Shown here one piece after another: positions 19,362 to 28,600 of a stretch of DNA of 64,000 nucleotides. A model generated the notes under the pieces. It searched no databases, was not told the origin of the DNA, and saw only the letters and a program-made list of their open reading frames with translations. A program made the translations under genes and the position numbers. The stretch covers positions 3,410,001-3,474,000 of the forward strand of contig CP075493.1 of the NCBI GenBank assembly GCA_021613535.1, given 5' to 3'. Origin of the DNA: Adineta vaga (lineage: Eukaryota; Animalia; Rotifera). Every line of letters starts with the position of its first letter. Position 1 is the stretch's first letter.

Positions 19362-21217
19362 TCACTTATTGTCCCATCCATCTGGATTTTGCATATTGGC
19401 ATGTCGTCGTTTGAATTCAGTTTTGAAATCAATACCAAGATCATCAAGATCTTTTTCATCACGAATAACACCCTAGAAAAGAAAAATAACGATAAGATTG
19501 CTAGTTAAATTGTACCATTATACCTTTGGTAAGTAACCCAATAGACGATGAGCATGTTCACGAAGTAATTTGATACGTTCTTCTTCGATAATTTGTTTCC
19601 GAAGTTGAGAAATACGTTCAGCTTCAACACGTTCATCAACGTCACGTTGCTAGATAAATAAAACGATCGTATTTGTAAGAGATTATTTAAAAAATACAAA
19701 CTTTATCAACTGCCATTTGACGTCGACGGTCTTCGAGTAATAGATCAACTGCTCGTTTATGTTCAACTTGTTTCATGCGACGTTTTTGAGCATTCATTTG
19801 TTCAATACGATCATCTTCAGCAAATTTAGCCATTAACTACAAGAAAAAAAATAAAAACAAAATTAGGAAAATAAAATTTATTCATTTTTCATCTTACCTG
19901 TTGTCTAAATCGATCTTCTTCTTGTTTAACTTCAATATCACGAACACGTTTAAATTCCAATTGTTCATCTCGTTCACGTTGTAATTCTAATCGTTGTCTT
20001 ATACGTACTTCCATTTCGTCACGTTCACGTTTTCGTATCGCTTGTTCTTGTTCTTCAAGATATAATTCTTGTCGAACTAATTCTTGTTCTTCACGATCTT
20101 CACGATCACGTTTTATCTGTTCACCTAATGCACGTTGAACTTTATCTAATGCTTCTTCACGTGCACGTTTTTCAGCTTTAGCGACTTCTTGACGTTTTTC
20201 TTGTGTTCGGCCATATTCTTGTATACGACGATTTTCTTCTTCCATACGTTGACGTTCCATTACTTTCCATTCTTCACGTTTTTGTTTAAATTCAGCGATA
20301 AATTCACGTGTAGCACGTTGACGTTCAAATTTACGTTCCATTTCTCTGTAAAATTAAAAAACAAAGCTTCGAACTTTACAAGCATGAATTTTAACTTACC
20401 GTTGATCTTCTTCATAAATCTTTCGAACAATTTCATCAATCACTAATTTTTCTCGAAGAAATTCTTCATATGCTTGTTGTTTACTTAATTCTCGTTCTTC
20501 AAGTTGTCGTTGAAGGTCTTGTTTATAACGAATCATTTCTTGTTGTCGAACAATTTCTTGTTGACGACGATCTGCTTCAGCTTTATCTGTTTCCGTACGC
20601 ATACGACGAGCGATTTCAGCATCTTCCAAATATGAATCAAATTTTAATGCTTCTTTTTCAGCCATTTGTGCAATACGTTCTTTTTGAACGTAAGCAGCAC
20701 GTAATTTCGATTCTAATTCTCTTAGTTCATAACTTGTTTCACTAGATTGAGTTAAAAAAAAAAGAAATTCTAAACATTCAGAGATTAGAAATTATCTAAA
20801 CATACCGAATTTGTTGTCGCATTTTTTCATCGCGTGTTTTCTCATGTTTCACACGTTCAAGTTCTATAGCTAAACGTTCTTCTTGACTTCGTGCTTCAGC
20901 AACTAATTTTTTCTCACATTGTGCTTTTATAACTGCTTCTTCCATAGCACGATCTCGGTCAGCACGTGCTTGTTCACGTATATATCGTTTATTGGCTGCT
21001 TTAGCTTCGAATTCTTGCATTTCAGTTTCGATTCGACCTTGATTTAATTGTCGTTGTTGAACTGTTCGTTGAGCTTCTTCTTCACGACGAGCATATTGAT
21101 TGGCATACCAACTATTGGCATTGTTAGCACTACCACCTTGTTGTTTATGTAATTGACGAGTTAATGCCTAAAAGATTAATTGATTAAAATGCTTGAAGGT
21201 TTAATAAAAATTACCAT
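19362..21217 (-). CDS. MNS1: Meiosis-specific nuclear structural protein 1 (ciliary coiled-coil protein)
   Basis: RQQIR..ELRELESKLRAAY..ERIAQMAEKE, LMAKFAEDDRIEQMNAQKRRMK, EEERIKLLREHAHRLLGYLPKG. The first coding exon is just ATG (21215-21217). Confidence 0.92.
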
Positions 21218-21865
21218 TGTTCTATAAAATAAAATGATATGTTCAAAGTAATGGAGGAGATATTAGTTTTGCATTGATTCTGTCTTTGTTTCACTCGACA
21301 ATTTCAACGAGACAGAGGAGAAAAAACGTTCTCTCCATTACTAAAGATACTTCTTTGACAACCACCTTACTATTCAATTTCTACTTGAAAATAAATTATT
21401 CTGCAGTGAAATGATAATTGTAAATTCAAATGATCTTCAGATTACTTTTAATTCTTATAAAAAAAAGACTTTTTGAACATAGATGTCAGTAGTTATTTAT
21501 AGCACACTTTACCTCTAAATGTGTTTGAAATGTTCGAGAATGCGTACGTTCATAATAGACCCTAAATATAGAATTCTCGAGACTCCAGACTAATTAACTC
21601 TCTGATACACAAAAAGAGATTGTGTCACATTCAACTCTTGACAATATCCATCTCGGCTTAGATGCATAATAAACTTCTTTTGAGTGTCTGATTAATAATT
21701 GCCTAGTTTATATAAATGTTTTCTTTTCTCAACGAGTGTATATTCACACGTACACACACACACACACACGCAATAACAAATGATGTGACAAAAAAAAATA
21801 AGAAAGTCACCGAGAAAAAACGGTCATTGTATTGTTTGCTTTTTGATATTTTCTTCATTTTCCAT

Positions 21866-23760
21866 TTATTTGTTGACTGCTTTCTTAGCTTGTACCATCT
21901 TTGCTAATTCTTTATAACGTTCTAAACATTCTTTCTTATTTCTACTCGGTAAACATTCTGCGATTTGATCCCAACGTGATGCACCTAATGCTGCCGGATA
22001 TGTTCGTAATGCTTGTTCAAAAATTCGTTGTTCATCAATTGTCCATGGTGTTGTTATATCTGGTTCACGTTCACTAAGAGTTAATTGATTAAGTTTAGCT
22101 TGATTTTCCAATAATGTGGATTGTTTATGTGAATTAAGTGCAATATGATCTAATGATGATGCTGTTTCTTCCACTTCTTTCTTTCCACTTGCAATATGTT
22201 TGGCTTTTTGCATAATATCTTGTACAGTACGATTTGCATTACCACCACAACGTTTGAGATATTCTTGAACAACTAGCCAACGATTTTGAACACCAGCTGG
22301 ATAGACTCGAAGTGCTTTAACAAGAAGTTCAATTTCATCGGATGTCCATTTGATATTCGAAGGTGAATTTGAAGAAGAAGCTGCCGACGATGATGATGAT
22401 TGTTGAGATAATTCTAAACGTGATTGTTGCATTTGTTCATCCATTTTTTTCAATTCACCAAGAATGATTTCACGTTGATCAACATTTTCTTCTTGTAGTT
22501 TCTCATTGATTGTTTTTAAATCATCATATGGAAGATATTCAATTAAAGTTTCAATTTGTTCAACTTGTTTGAGATTGGCTGATGATGCTGTATCATTGAA
22601 ATAATTCATTGATTTACATAAGTCACGTAATTGTTTCTTTTCTTTTCTAGAGAAAAATCAGAATATATGTTAATGAATTATTTGAGAATCAAAATACAAT
22701 TCATGTTAATGACAAATTTCCTAAACTTACTTCATTACTTTCTTTTGAGCATCTTTTTCTTTTTTAACTTCATCTTGTTTTCGTTTGGTCTCTTCTTCTG
22801 CTCGTTGTTTTTCATCGGCAATTCGTTGTGCTTCATCGAGTTCTTTCTGTTTTTGTTCTTGTCGACGTTTATCATTTTCTTGTTTTCGACGTTGTTTTTC
22901 ATCATCTTTTCGTTGTTGTTCTTCTTTCTTTTGTCGTTTTATACGCGGATCAAGTGCATAAGCACGATCAACTAAATTACGTAAACGTGTCATTTCAGTT
23001 TTCTTACGTTTCTGTCGTTCAACACGATTTAATTTTTCAATATAACGTCGTTCATCACGATCTTGTCCTTGAGATTTATCTTCTTCATCTAAGCAAAAAA
23101 ACAAAAGCAAGATGAATTTAAGGAAAATTTACTTTAGATTCACATACCCAAATATGAATATTCACGCCAAGATTCAAAATCATACCAAAATCGATAGAAT
23201 TTATTTACTTGTTCAAATGATGTTTCATCATTGCCTAGCAAAGGTACATGTTGATGTATCGACCAACGTGCATTACGTTCAAAAACAGGTCCAAAAATGC
23301 CATAGAAATTATCGGCTGTCGTTGGATTTGGTATGGCATCATCAAATTTTGGATCAACACTATCATACGATCGTCGTAATGTTGGATTTGATAAGAGTTC
23401 GAAAGCATGAGTAATCAAAGAGAATCGTTCACTTTCGATTCGTTTCGATTTATCAGGATGATAACGTAAAATTAATTGTTTATGAGCACTACGTATTTGT
23501 TTTTGTGTTGCTTTATAACGTAATTTAGCTAAACCTAATACTTTATAATGATCTTGATCTTTCCATTCAGTAAGATTAAGTTTTCGAAGAAAAGATTCAT
23601 GTTTATCCCAATCGATATCTAATTGATCATTTTCTTTTTCGTCATCATCATTTGCATCATCATCGATATCACTATCACTGATTCCACCTTTTTCATCTCC
23701 GGTAGTGATTATATGTGAACGAAAATAACGAACACCAACACGTTCATAATGATTATCATC
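21866..23760 (-). CDS. DNAJC2: DNAJC2 (MPP11/zuotin) module: J domain, zuotin homology domain, charged region, two SANT domains
   Basis: [112 protein letters not shown]. Confidence 0.95.
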
Positions 23761-25673
23761 CTGAAAGATATAAATAAATTTTAAATTTAATTCAGAATTA
23801 TCTATTCAAATCATTTTTTTCAGTATCTTGACAATAGAATACTTGAAAGAACGACATATATACCGTTGATAGTTGAACTTTTGCATATTTATTTTCAATA
23901 TAACACTAAAATAATCATGATATATGTTTCAGATTAGCTCGAGTACAAAAAGAAATTACTTACTTGTCTTGCAGCACCAAGTGCAATAACTTCATCACCA
24001 TTGATAGATGAAAGCATATCAGCATTTGGTAATTTATTTTGAAGAGCATCACGTAATTTAGGTACCTTTGTACCACCACCACATAGAACAATCTAAATTA
24101 ATCATTCAGTATAAGTTTATTAAACAACGAAAAAATGCTACTTACTAATTTGATATCATCAGCTTGTAATTGTGCTTTTTCAAGAATAATATCAATAGGT
24201 TTTAAGCATTCATAAATTAACGGATTTGCTGAACCTTCAAAACGAAGTCTAATCGAATAGAGAGCGAGAGAAAGAAGGAAGATATACATGATTAAATAAG
24301 AATAACGTATATTGTCAAACCTGCTAACATTGCTATCTAAATCAATACCATCGTGAAGTGCGTCTATTGAACATTGAGTAACGGCTGTTGTTGATAGAAC
24401 ATGTTTTGCTTGTTCTGCACAAGCACGAAGTTTTAATAATGATCTTGATGCACCTCTTGGATCGCTTTTCGTTTTTCTAAAGATAGAAAAACAAAATGTA
24501 ACTGTTCGATCGTACAGATATGATTTAAGGCATAGATAAAAAGATGAAACCTAGGTCACCAAAGAATTACTTTTGAAATTCATCTGCAATAATATCTACG
24601 ATTAGATCTGTATAAGTATCACCACTATTTTCAAATCCATCAATAGATGCAACTGTCTTAAAACATCCACCGACTGTTTGAAGGATGGAACATTCATATG
24701 TTGAACCACCAAGTCGATAAACAAGTACATTACTAAATGCAAAACGAGAGTTATGTTTCATTGAATTTTTATCATTTCGGTTTCATACGTTTCCACATGT
24801 CCACCATCTTTATCTAATTCATATGCTAAACAAGCTGAACATGCATCTGAAATAATTGAATGAAGTTCTATTCCACTTTTCTTCATACAAGCTCTACAAT
24901 AATACAATGAAGATCTTGTCAGAATGAAAAAGTTTTTCTCTACCGAATCATATCTTGTTTGTTTGTTTGCGTCATTTTATAAGGCATAGAAAGTACAGCC
25001 TGAACTTCACGTGCACCGGTAACGGATAGAACAAGTTCTAAATAAGAAAATCAATTTGTAATGAAATAGATAGATTTTTTCAACGTATAATTGACTTACG
25101 TCGAACATAATTTAATAAATGAACTAGAACAGTTTCAAGAGGTGTTGATTTTGTCTTGCCATTAATTGTCAAAGAGAATTCAATCCGATCATTCTTTTCA
25201 GTAACCTATAGATTGAAATAATGACTTTTTTTTATAAATTCATCTTTCTTTTTATTAGTATTTACAGTGATTGAAGATTTTTGTTTATAATATTTTGATA
25301 GAGCATTATCAGCATCATATTTTTCAAGGAAATGTGGTGACCATAGAATAGTATTTGTTTGATTACGAACAAAACCTTGTTTTGATGGAAGTCCTGTCGA
25401 CTACAAAGAAAACATTGTATTTAATAATTAGAAACAATTTTGTTTTACATACAATATCATTTCCGTCATTGAATGTAATAAATGTTGGTGTTACACGATC
25501 ACCTAATTCATTGACAATCGTTTCACTTCGACCTTCCTAAATTATTTTCAAAATAAAAGATACATATAGATAGAAATGATTTGTATTACTTTGAAATATG
25601 CTACAACGATATTACTAGCACCTAATCGTATGCCAACAAGTGCAGAATTTACGTCTTTAGATGATGAAGTCAT
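21866..25673 (-). CDS. Fused HSPA14(NBD)-DNAJC2 protein: single-chain ribosome-associated complex (RAC), ~983 aa
   Basis: 14 exons, all GT-AG and phase-compatible: 25590-25673, 25453-25536, 25266-25400, 25100-25205, 24944-25037, 24789-24893, 24571-24732, 24321-24476, 24146-24248, 23964-24092, 23864-23905, 23148-23760, 22731-23088, 21866-22646. Confidence 0.8.
23964..25673 (-). CDS. HSPA14: HSPA14 (Hsp70L1/Ssz1-type) nucleotide-binding-domain module of the fusion
   Basis: [28 protein letters not shown] (R/K in place of D is HSPA14-typical), [43 protein letters not shown]. 386 aa, with no substrate-binding domain following. Confidence 0.85.
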
Positions 25674-28600
25674 TTTTGTATGTAGGATATTTCCAAAAAA
25701 AGGATGAAAAGAAAATGAAACTAAATGGAATGGATAAGAAGAAGAATATTCTTTGGAAGTACTTGATTGCAGCAATCAAATAGAAGTAATAGATGGCGCT
25801 TATTGATAATATTTTGTTTTATGTACTTTTATAAAATATTCATTCGTGGTAAAATCATGCAGTGCTCGTCTAATATAAAATTCAATGTAAACATGATCTT
25901 CGCAGTACCTCTAGAGACACTATAATCATCAAGGATGACATTTTCTAAAAAGATTATTTTGATAGTTTCATTTCGTAACACGCAAATAAGATTTTCTGAA
26001 AGATCTACATTATAAAAAAATAACATCTCTATACTTCTCTAAAGCTTTGATGATTAATTTTTAAATAGGTAATTATTTTGAATACCACTGCATGGGAGCG
26101 TCAACATCGCTGAACTAGTGACCTGCTCTTGACATGAATAGTATGAAAAGGTTGAAGAAACCAGTAAATTAACAGCTGTTTATCTTTCATCATGACCTCT
26201 CCTTCAATTCCAACACATTTCATTTTATAGTTTGCATGCAACGATTTGTCAGGTGCGCATTTATCGCAAGAGAACTACGATCAATTATTTCTTCGTATTT
26301 AATGAAATAAGAATTTGCTATCAAGACATTTTCTTCGCAACTCAAGGATATGTCAGATTTATTCAATTATAAAATGACCTTGTCTAGCTTTATAGATCGG
26401 TACTATTTCAGTGTATGGATATACTTATGTTCATCTAACTCGATAGCTATACAAAATAATAGAATCATTTATATTATCGATGTTTTTCTTTATAAAATTT
26501 CATTTTAGAATACTAAATCAAATTGGAATATGTTTTCTATATTTCAAGGCTAAAATCTAACTCTATGCATCTGAAAGGAAGAAAATAATGTGAACTATTA
26601 TTTCAAGAAAGTATATCGATTATATATTTATCCTTAGGTGTTTCTTTAAGTTATTCATTTTAGAATAATATTTCAATCGTTTTATTTGTCAACGAATAGA
26701 TTTTTGTGAAAAGAAATTCCATAGAAATCTCTTTCTCTTTGTATTTCTTTCTGAGACGGAAAAAATAATACTCGATGACTGAAAAATAAAGAATTAGTTT
26801 TTTGATCATATTCTTATACAAAATAGATATGACTCGAAATCATGAATCTTCTCATAAGTATCACTTTCTGACTTTGAGAATTATCTGCACTTGACACGCA
26901 CATAGACATTCTTTAGTAGATATGAAGACGTTGCATTTGTTTCTACAGAATCAATAATAGGTTTTATATTTTCATCAAATTCTAAGAAATTTAAAAAAAA
27001 TCTTTTACATTTTTAGCTGATTCAAATTAAAACATTTTTTCTAACGAATGAGGTTGACACTTGACTATTGCTACCCTCTGATACATATCATCCAATTACT
27101 TTAGCGTTTCGATAGCGGATGTTCTAAAGTAAATAACCATCTGCTCGTATATAGCTTATTGTTTATCACTATACACATACTGGGATAATATCTTTTAGTT
27201 ATATTAATTAGTTTGACATGTATTAAATTAAAAATACATAATTAGAAGACTTTCGATTATGATTCTTCATATTCCATCTATAATTAAAATAGTATTTATA
27301 CATTAATTGTTTAAATATGAGATTTAATCGTTTCTTTGACGTCATTGCTGTTTGATATCTTGATGAAGACGGGATCATATAGAGATTTAGATCAAAGAAC
27401 AAACTGTGTCGTTTCTTATAATCAGTATCATTAGAATGAAAAATATATAGCTTTGTCTCACGTCTATTTACATAGGTAATACGATATGTTCTTCTGATAA
27501 GACATCAATTATTGATTTAGCTTTTTTCTTTTTCTGTTAGTGTCATTTGTTCAGATTATTATCATTATTTTCTGTAATTTAGACGATATTTTAAAAGATG
27601 GTAGTTATGTGACAGACTTCATATGTCTTTGAATCAGCGACCCCTTTCGATGAAAACATCGAAAGATGAAATAGAATTTGAATTGAAATTATAAAATGAT
27701 TCGATTTCTTGGAAATAATTATGTATGTAGTTGCATATGGCTTTTTTCCCTCAAAGATTACGAAGAGTAACAGGTGTTGTATGAATCATTTTGTTCACAA
27801 GAATAAAAAAGGAAGAATAGGAAAAAAAAAGTATATTCTTTACTATAAGGTTAATCAATGATCGATCGATCGAGGAAAAAAGAGCGGCGTGAATAAAAAG
27901 AAATCGAAGAAACCATCAATATAATCTATACATGCAATGTTTTTGTACGTAACGGTCAATTCTTCGTTTGTTTAGTATTTACTATTAGTCGTAAAGTCAA
28001 GCGTGTATGTATATATAAATAATAGTAATGTTGATCGAGAGGCTTGTTTTTTTTTTGTTTTTTTTCTCCTTAAATTCGTTCGAAGAAAATATTTCTTTTT
28101 ATTAAATTATTAACTTTTATTTCTCCTGTGTAATCATACATTCATTGATAAGCATAGACAACTCAATGAATTTGAAGTATATATAGATCTATCGAGATTT
28201 GAACGGGTGTTTATTATCATCGTATCTTAAGGCGATTATCTCACTTACTTACACATACTATTCAGGTCTCAAAAATACACTTATATAAACATATAAAGAA
28301 CGAGAGGAAGAGAAAGGCGAACAAATAGATAGAAGAATAGAAGAAAAGCAAAAGAAAGAAAAGTGCTGACAAACACTGTCTCATGCAATATATAGATATA
28401 AAAACGTCTTTAAGAAGAATATAATTAACATTTACGTTTCAGTAAGTATATGATACATTTATTCGGAGTTTTCTCTCAATTTGTTACTATATAAACAGAA
28501 AGAAAATTCTCGATGAAGCAATGCGAACAATTAGTTACAGCTGTGACATCGAACAAATACGTTTTATATTTGATATGTCGATGTTGACATCAGCGATTGA

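Follow-up and report, generated by a model that had tools for sequence, protein, structure and literature searches.

A probable single-chain ribosome-associated complex in the bdelloid rotifer Adineta vaga: an HSPA14-type ATPase domain joined in frame to DNAJC2/zuotin

Throughout eukaryotes, the complex known as RAC (ribosome-associated complex) is regarded as an obligate heterodimer. In the 64,000-nucleotide (nt) stretch of the Adineta vaga genome analyzed here (contig CP075493.1, hereafter called the window, to which all plain positions refer), a nucleotide-binding domain (NBD) of the HSPA14 type and a J-protein of the DNAJC2/zuotin type follow each other on the minus strand at a distance of approximately 200 nt, and this locus raises the question of whether the two RAC subunits are encoded here by two genes or by one. 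The original prediction proposed an in-frame fusion of HSPA14 to DNAJC2. The best explanation of the findings as a whole, to which we assign a probability of roughly 0.88, is that this is the sole RAC gene of A. vaga, that it encodes one polypeptide, and that this polypeptide acts by the mechanism proposed below. A covalent chain of 983 amino acids (aa) is supported by the combination of RNA junctions, full-length open reading frames (ORFs) in relatives, a conserved structure in genomic contigs, and the absence of another copy.

Transcripts across the junction

The fused gene runs from 25673 to 21866 and consists of 14 exons separated by 13 introns, all of which are GT..AG and 50-103 nt long (Table 1). 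Its coding sequence of 2952 nt contains no internal stops. Exon borders were taken from RNA contig junctions and moved by no more than 2 bases to fit GT..AG. Regarding transcripts, three sets of RNA-type contigs, each from a different study (X1, X13, and X5), and a DNA run (X11) were mapped on 21400-26200, with 21740-21780 being left out as a repeat. All 13 junctions were present in the RNA contigs of three studies, including 23905|23964 and 23760|23864, the two by which the original prediction had the modules joined. Two of the sets, X13 and X5, provided one contig each (2587 and 2611 nt, respectively) that extended from a 3' end at 21864 or 21840 to 24893 and, thus, spanned both modules. The RNA sets had no depth over the intergenic flanks, whereas the DNA run had 0 joints and covered the region at approximately 115x throughout, flanks included. 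The fused form is the dominant transcript.

The in-frame fusion of the two proteins into a chain of approximately 983 aa with the order NBD-J-ZHD-SANT-SANT (ZHD, zuotin homology domain) is borne out by these junctions, by the open frame, and by the fused ORFs of relatives described below. The ten NBD exons, the last of which ends at 23964 in phase 0, and the 42-nt exon behind them, in phase 0 and with canonical ends, were also read as predicted. In the public A. vaga gene model I4U23_001027 (P0231, 978 aa), which matches all exons of the window at 100% identity except for the length of this mini exon, a donor 15 nt upstream is used and the mini exon is 27 nt (9 aa). The RNA contigs of three studies support 42 nt, and the public gene model is corrected to this length; the short in-frame version of nine residues may represent a minor isoform or an error of annotation.

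Some minor observations were made on the same contigs. A loose contig end of X1 at 23671 was considered as an alternative 5' exon and rejected because it belongs to another gene at C6:2115741 that shares a GAT-rich stretch of 17 nt. Single-base differences between the window and the RNA or DNA contigs of other samples were noted at 24148 (A>G, beside a donor site) and at approximately 40 other positions in the mapped region, and X5 shares most of these differences with the DNA run X11. They look like strain or allele variation, not editing. Some contigs of the DNA run also diverge from the window at 22528, 22631, and 22635, with a rise in depth (22528-22635), which suggests that the last exon near the intron between exons 13 and 14 contains a low-complexity or repeated stretch or that haplotypes differ structurally at this site.

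Distribution and constraint among bdelloids

Homology searches were run with single exons or database proteins as queries. Exon-level searches found close relatives at 78-92% identity. In a 52.6-kb contig of an ENA metagenome (L011), all 14 exons are present in the same order with the mini exon in frame, and the same applies to exons 10-14 in L010 (Logan), a short contig that starts within exon 10. For the mini exon, L011 has CYIENKYSKAQLST and L010 has CYIENKYSKCEISK, with the changes being mostly at the third codon position; this exon also stays in frame in L013 and in the bdelloid proteins. The intron before the mini exon has 52-58 nt in the window, L011, and L010 and is absent in L013; the intron after it has 103 nt in the window, approximately 137 nt in L011, approximately 460 nt in L010, and 0 in L013. 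L013 (Logan SRR14782835, 819-1589) runs without interruption from the last NBD exon through the mini exon into the zuotin exon, such that one exon contains the whole junction. Six further introns, of 55-68 nt, persist in this bdelloid relative, and its intron loss falls exactly at the fusion junction.

Near-complete ORFs were found on transcript contigs of other taxa, namely, P0220 (973 aa, on a contig of 3124 nt) and P0212 (943 aa). Each of them carries HSP70 (profile positions 2-375 of 599), DnaJ, ZHD, RAC_head, and Myb in one frame, and the HSP70 match of P0220 covers its residues 8-382. Searches with P0220 and its zuotin half retrieved fused models under the names of Rotaria sp. Silwood1, Rotaria sp. 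Silwood2, R. sordida, R. magnacalcarata, Adineta steineri, A. vaga, and Didymodactylos carnosus. Six of these seven were within the best 120 DNAJC2 entries, and the Didymodactylos model was found only by the search with the whole of P0220. The same 120 entries included a short bdelloid-like fragment (P0155) and 113 non-bdelloid proteins of 404-647 aa without the Hsp70 family PF00012, from fish, amphibians, mammals, crustaceans, molluscs, echinoderms, a bryozoan, a hemichordate, and insects. The nearest non-bdelloid relatives, at 53-57% identity (P0160/L012, P0162, P0008, and the P0171 cluster, one member of which has 622 aa), are also unfused; they either begin at a methionine of their own approximately 25-35 residues ahead of FEPVGKWF or lack an NBD in the 6.7 kb upstream. 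No named monogonont, Seison, or acanthocephalan sequences were among the matches listed. The fusion is common to every sampled bdelloid genus (Adineta, Rotaria, and Didymodactylos) and, thus, is old and not the property of a single species. The original prediction had ascribed it to one animal; the fusion is real in A. vaga, but is not private to it.

Of the 150 best DNAJC2 representatives in the exhaustive library, P0047, P0077, P0140, and P0145 are long enough for an upstream NBD. The first three proved to be prediction chimeras with MFS, DUF1759, or GDSL-lipase genes, P0145 has an unassigned upstream extension, and none of the four is an Hsp70 fusion. As a separate observation, the Didymodactylos carnosus model (P0233, NCBI, 1672 aa) consists of the fused RAC gene merged with an upstream BRCT-domain gene (668 aa), and the linker that leads from its mini exon to ERVG has 16 residues more than that of other bdelloids.

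When the window was compared with L011, the proportions of nonsynonymous (pN) and synonymous (pS) differences were 0.13 and 0.77, respectively, in the NBD exons, with pS being saturated, and 0.06 and 0.58 in the mini exon. Mean pairwise identities among nine bdelloid sequences are given by segment in Table 1. The constraint on the NBD is similar to that on the SANT region, 168 of its 377 alignment columns are invariant, and its ten exons are open in every species examined. Judging from these substitution patterns, the fused arrangement is under purifying selection, and since pN is far below pS and many columns are invariant, the NBD is a maintained domain and not a decaying relic.

Regarding copy number, searches of the A. 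vaga genome covered 100.8 Mb in six contigs and found no second copy of the zuotin exon or of an NBD exon, which leaves this single locus and no unfused DNAJC2 or HSPA14 beside it. The strongest genome matches to vertebrate HSPA14 were canonical HSC70 genes with the DLLLLDV linker. Two of the HSPA14-like matches, on C4 and C3, were considered as a second HSPA14 and rejected as canonical HSC70, being 64-71% identical to plant HSC70. These two genes, at C4:2853629-2854795 (L015) and C3:10996978-10998195 (L016), have NBD identities to plant HSC70 of 71 and 64%, respectively, and are likely to encode the client Hsp70s of the fused RAC.

Parts kept and lost at the subunit interface

The NBD, over residues 11-390, aligns to residues 4-379 of human HSPA1A. 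It obtains a score of 226 bits with HSPA14, compared with 178 bits for HSC70, is 32% identical to HSPA14, and shares the motifs DxNVSRxRFE and AKHxLST with it; by these measures of sequence, it is closer to HSPA14 than to HSC70. The equivalents of the catalytic residues D10, K71, and D199 are R, P, and R, respectively, while HSPA14 itself has H at D10 and K at D199 and retains the lysine at K71. In exon-by-exon Pfam searches, HSP70 was matched at profile positions 187-239 and 330-371 of 599, and exon 12 matched DnaJ at 2e-16 and the ZUO1-like ZHD, which is divided between exons 12 and 13, at 1.1e-20. The zuotin half matches the ribosome-bound Zuo1 structures 7Z3N (chain C, 1.4e-60) and 7X3K (6e-56), and the SANT region matches 2M2E at 1.4e-15.

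Only 14 residues, the first of which prolong the last NBD helix, separate the end of the NBD (GAARQ) from the zuotin part, at a place where HSPA14 has the beta part of its substrate-binding domain (SBD-beta) of approximately 120 residues. A rudimentary, lidless SBD-beta of the HSPA14/Ssz1 type is absent at the locus: the flanking introns of 58 and 103 nt have no coding capacity and no usable reading frame, and the latter has no usable ATG. The prediction that there is no room for an HSPA14 SBD is consistent with this. Unfused DNAJC2 proteins have 25-40 residues before the EPVG motif, often with a proline-rich, LP-like stretch, whereas in the fused protein only DDNHY precedes ERVGVRYF, such that these 25-40 residues are replaced by the 14-aa linker and five more. 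ERVG is the conserved counterpart of EPVG and is located approximately 20 residues past the end of the NBD. Descent of the mini exon from ENKFAQVVL, a strand of the HSPA14 SBD, was considered and rejected as unsupported; p was 0.0005 in one pairing only and 0.05-0.97 in the other species pairs.

In fungi, the N-terminus of Zuo1 adds beta strands to the SBD of Ssz1 and inserts an LP pseudo-substrate into it, the EPVG motif binds the linker site of the NBD, and the Zuo1 N-terminus (ZuoN) embraces the SBD (PMC7083937). The dimer owes its stability to the intertwining of ZuoN at the NBD-SBD interface, and ATP-bound Ssb is a binding partner of the NBD of Ssz1 itself (PMC8476630). The HSPA14 SBD and the beta0/LP/beta1 segment of zuotin are absent from the fused protein. 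Still present in it are the EPVG-type motif, the J domain with its HPD tripeptide, the ZHD, the RAC head, and the two SANT domains. Therefore, only part of the dimer interface has been lost: the SBD clamp lacks both of its partners, and the NBD-contacting ERVG and the NBD platform are retained.

Compared with mammalian RAC (HSPA14/Hsp70L1 with DNAJC2/MPP11/ZRF1), the fused protein has the same domain families, including two SANT domains, and its zuotin part is 40-44% identical to vertebrate DNAJC2; the differences are that there is one gene and one chain and that it lacks the HSPA14 SBD-beta of approximately 120 aa as well as the 25-40 residues with which DNAJC2 starts ahead of EPVG. Fungal RAC (Ssz1 and Zuo1; 5MB9, 7X3K, and 7Z3N/7Z3O) likewise combines an atypical non-hydrolysing Hsp70 with zuotin at 1:1 and keeps the EPVG-type motif, but its Ssz1 SBD is clamped by the Zuo1 N-terminal strands and LP (PMC7083937), neither partner of which is present in the fused protein, and its Zuo1 C-terminus is a four-helix bundle in place of the SANT domains, which are of the animal and plant type. 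The NBD fold is like that of canonical Hsp70, and the short segment behind it would sit where the interdomain linker binds; unlike canonical Hsp70, the fused protein has no SBD, D10, K71, and D199 are replaced, and the chain runs on into a J-protein. A RAC defined as a heterodimer of two separately encoded subunits does not describe this protein, which has one gene, one frame, and one mRNA form in the contigs.

The mechanism that we propose combines these features. The ZHD and the middle domain would anchor the chain at the ribosomal tunnel exit in the manner of zuotin, and the J domain would stimulate ATP hydrolysis by a separately encoded canonical cytosolic Hsc70; both ribosome association and the stimulation of a canonical Hsp70 ATPase are expected from the retention of the J, ZHD, and middle domains. 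The non-hydrolysing NBD may serve as a docking platform that positions Hsc70, in the way that the NBD of Ssz1 positions Ssb. The covalent link, together with ERVG docked in cis on the linker-binding cleft of the NBD, would replace the clamp between the SBD and ZuoN. If the SBD has been replaced in this manner, direct binding of nascent chains by the HSPA14 SBD would have been lost or assumed by other parts of the protein. Yeast Ssz1 without its putative peptide-binding domain reportedly functions in vivo, which fits a lineage that loses the SBD.

Competing readings and the place of the fusion among known systems

An operon-like pair, in which the HSPA14 mRNA ends after the NBD and DNAJC2 is made from a separate mRNA that is trans-spliced to a spliced leader (SL) or internally initiated, would suit the short distance between the modules and the AATAAA within the mini exon of the window. 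Bdelloids use SL trans-splicing, and contigs may hide rare isoforms. However, the mini-exon junctions occur in three RNA studies, and the RNA sets contain no loose contig ends at the acceptors 23905 and 23760, which are the candidates for receiving a leader. AATAAA is AACAAA in both L010 and L011, with the encoded residues being kept, and this removes the argument from a poly(A) signal. The translation of exon 12 is free of methionine, such that an in-frame ATG is lacking ahead of the J domain, as had been predicted, and also within it, and a separate J-protein could not be started at AUG; the bdelloid SL is not known to end in AUG. Taken together with the single-exon junction of L013 and the full-length fused ORFs of relatives, an operon is very improbable. 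An assembly or annotation chimera of two unrelated loci is a familiar hazard in this family because many long DNAJC2 models are fused with neighbors (MFS, GDSL lipase, or DDE) and a BRCT gene has been merged into the Didymodactylos model; in the present case, this explanation may be set aside as having next to no probability because spliced RNA spans the junction, the contigs of the independent DNA run cover the flanks, and the linkage is repeated in four independent contigs of other taxa.

The fusion transcript may also be real and its NBD a functionless, decaying extension on a self-sufficient DNAJC2, for which the degenerate catalytic residues, the missing SBD, and the low AlphaFold2 confidence in subdomain IIB may be cited. 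The positions of D10 and D199 are likewise degenerate in functional HSPA14, and the purifying selection, invariant columns, and ten NBD exons open everywhere examined make decay improbable, albeit less so than the operon. Alternatively, a protease may cut the chain in the linker or acidic spacer, leaving a two-subunit RAC held together by the contact between ERVG and the NBD. The spacer past ERVG is acidic, variable, and predicted to be disordered (see below), and nothing else speaks for cleavage. No conserved cleavage motif was seen, and, since the parts that stabilize the dimer are absent, separated halves are expected to bind weakly; we regard cleavage as no better a prospect than the operon.

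Several points nevertheless weigh against an intact single-chain RAC of HSPA14 descent. Contigs cannot prove that single RNA molecules cover the whole gene, and rare isoforms are dropped from them; accordingly, a minor DNAJC2-only transcript may exist alongside the fused form. The support for the single chain is at the levels of RNA and sequence. The HSPA14 orthology of the NBD appears probable from scores, shared motifs, and context, and a maximum-likelihood tree of NBDs with three groups only (bdelloid, vertebrate HSPA14, and canonical Hsp70) and long branches cannot test it. A query with the HSPA14 SBD found no counterpart elsewhere in the genome (best E value, 0.3), which is weak evidence for the absence of this domain because the SBD is poorly conserved. 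The AlphaFold2 model of a full-length fused protein (P0230) is moderate, with a mean predicted local distance difference test score (pLDDT) of 70.5, a predicted template modeling score of 0.44, and a pLDDT of approximately 60-68 over the ERVG segment; the acidic spacer is at 30-41 and, thus, predicted to be disordered, and subdomain IIB is of low confidence. The input alignment had 32 rows, and several HSPA14 rows were misplaced in it by MAFFT. The docking of ERVG in cis on the NBD is put forward here by analogy with fungi, and the complex prediction for the NBD of P0230 (1-392) with its linker and ERVG segment (393-470) gave 0.00, 0.36, and 0.07 and counts neither way.

With these points considered, we retain the single-chain RAC as the preferred reading: it is a known complex in a new form, a lineage-wide single-chain RAC without the clamp between the SBD and ZuoN. 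The original prediction knew of no description of such a fusion. Full-text literature searches found no paper linking bdelloids with zuotin, DNAJC2, or HSPA14 and no described natural fusion of Ssz1 with Zuo1 or of HSPA14 with DNAJC2, but fused gene models are already public in NCBI and UniProt, unnamed or named DNAJC2 only (for example, as 'DnaJ homolog subfamily C member 2' in UniRef for Rotaria sordida and Adineta steineri). Bdelloid entries that bear only the name DNAJC2 carry an Hsp70 domain. The fusion is less surprising than a new system would be because the fusing of obligate partners is a familiar evolutionary outcome, and it represents a clean Rosetta-stone case of an interaction that led to a fusion.

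Whether the atypical Hsp70 subunit of RAC is a structural helper or an active chaperone that acts through a rudimentary SBD is debated, and an active role has been argued for (PMC7083937). An animal class with fused subunits that has dropped the SBD and the zuotin pseudo-substrate represents a natural deletion experiment on this question. It may be that bdelloids have used a covalent minimal RAC without the SBD and the LP/beta clamp throughout their history, that this clamp is chiefly a device for holding or gating the dimer and not an indispensable nascent-chain site, and that the NBD, EPVG, and J-ZHD form the functional core; we consider the chances for and against this proposal to be even. 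The predicted RAC core would then comprise three parts: the NBD as a platform, EPVG as a contact, and J-ZHD as the anchor on the ribosome. The single-chain construct is usable for structural and yeast-complementation work, and the interest of the finding lies mainly with specialists in co-translational folding.

Table 1. Positions of the fused gene and its parts in the 64,000-nt window, with mean pairwise identities among nine bdelloid sequences
Feature	Position	Strand	Content and support	Mean pairwise identity
Start codon	25673	minus	ATG	
Exons 1-10 with introns	23964..25673	minus	Complete HSPA14-type Hsp70 NBD; ends ...GAARQ	0.75
NBD exons 1-5	25673-25590, 25536-25453, 25400-25266, 25205-25100, 25037-24944	minus	RNA junctions	
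NBD exons 6-10	24893-24789, 24732-24571, 24476-24321, 24248-24146, 24092-23964	minus	RNA junctions	
58-nt GT..AG intron between last NBD exon and mini exon	23906..23963	minus	Skipped in X1, X13, and X5 RNA; present in X11 DNA	
Exon 11, 42-nt linker (mini exon)	23864..23905	minus	Phase 0 on both sides, codes for 14 residues; joints in three RNA sets	0.71
103-nt GT..AG intron between mini exon and zuotin exon	23761..23863	minus	RNA joints	
Exon 12	23148..23760	minus	Zuotin N segment, acidic spacer, J domain, first half of ZHD; starts DDNHYERVG	
EPVG-type motif (ERVG segment)	23722..23745	minus	Alignment with DNAJC2 orthologues; conserved across bdelloids including Didymodactylos	0.66
Acidic spacer		minus	In exon 12	0.52
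J domain	~23362-23553	minus	HPD tripeptide within RYHPDK	0.90
Exon 13	22731..23088	minus	Second half of ZHD and charged middle domain; Pfam ZHD 5e-13; RNA joints	
Exon 14	21866..22646	minus	RAC head, SANT/Myb 1, SANT/Myb 2, stop; Pfam RAC_head 1.5e-8, Myb 2.3e-14	
SANT/Myb 1	~22199-22351	minus	In exon 14	
SANT/Myb 2	~21908-22051	minus	In exon 14	
Stop codon	21866-21868	minus		

Regarding the surroundings of the fused gene, a (CA)n microsatellite is located at 21749-21771, approximately 100 nt past the stop codon. Just downstream of the gene, an ORF at 20796-21020 on the minus strand encodes a coiled coil rich in Glu, Arg, and Lys. TPH-domain (PF13868) genes at L011:8807-10057 occupy the position that matches this coiled-coil ORF of the window, and the neighborhood seems to be syntenic between bdelloid species.

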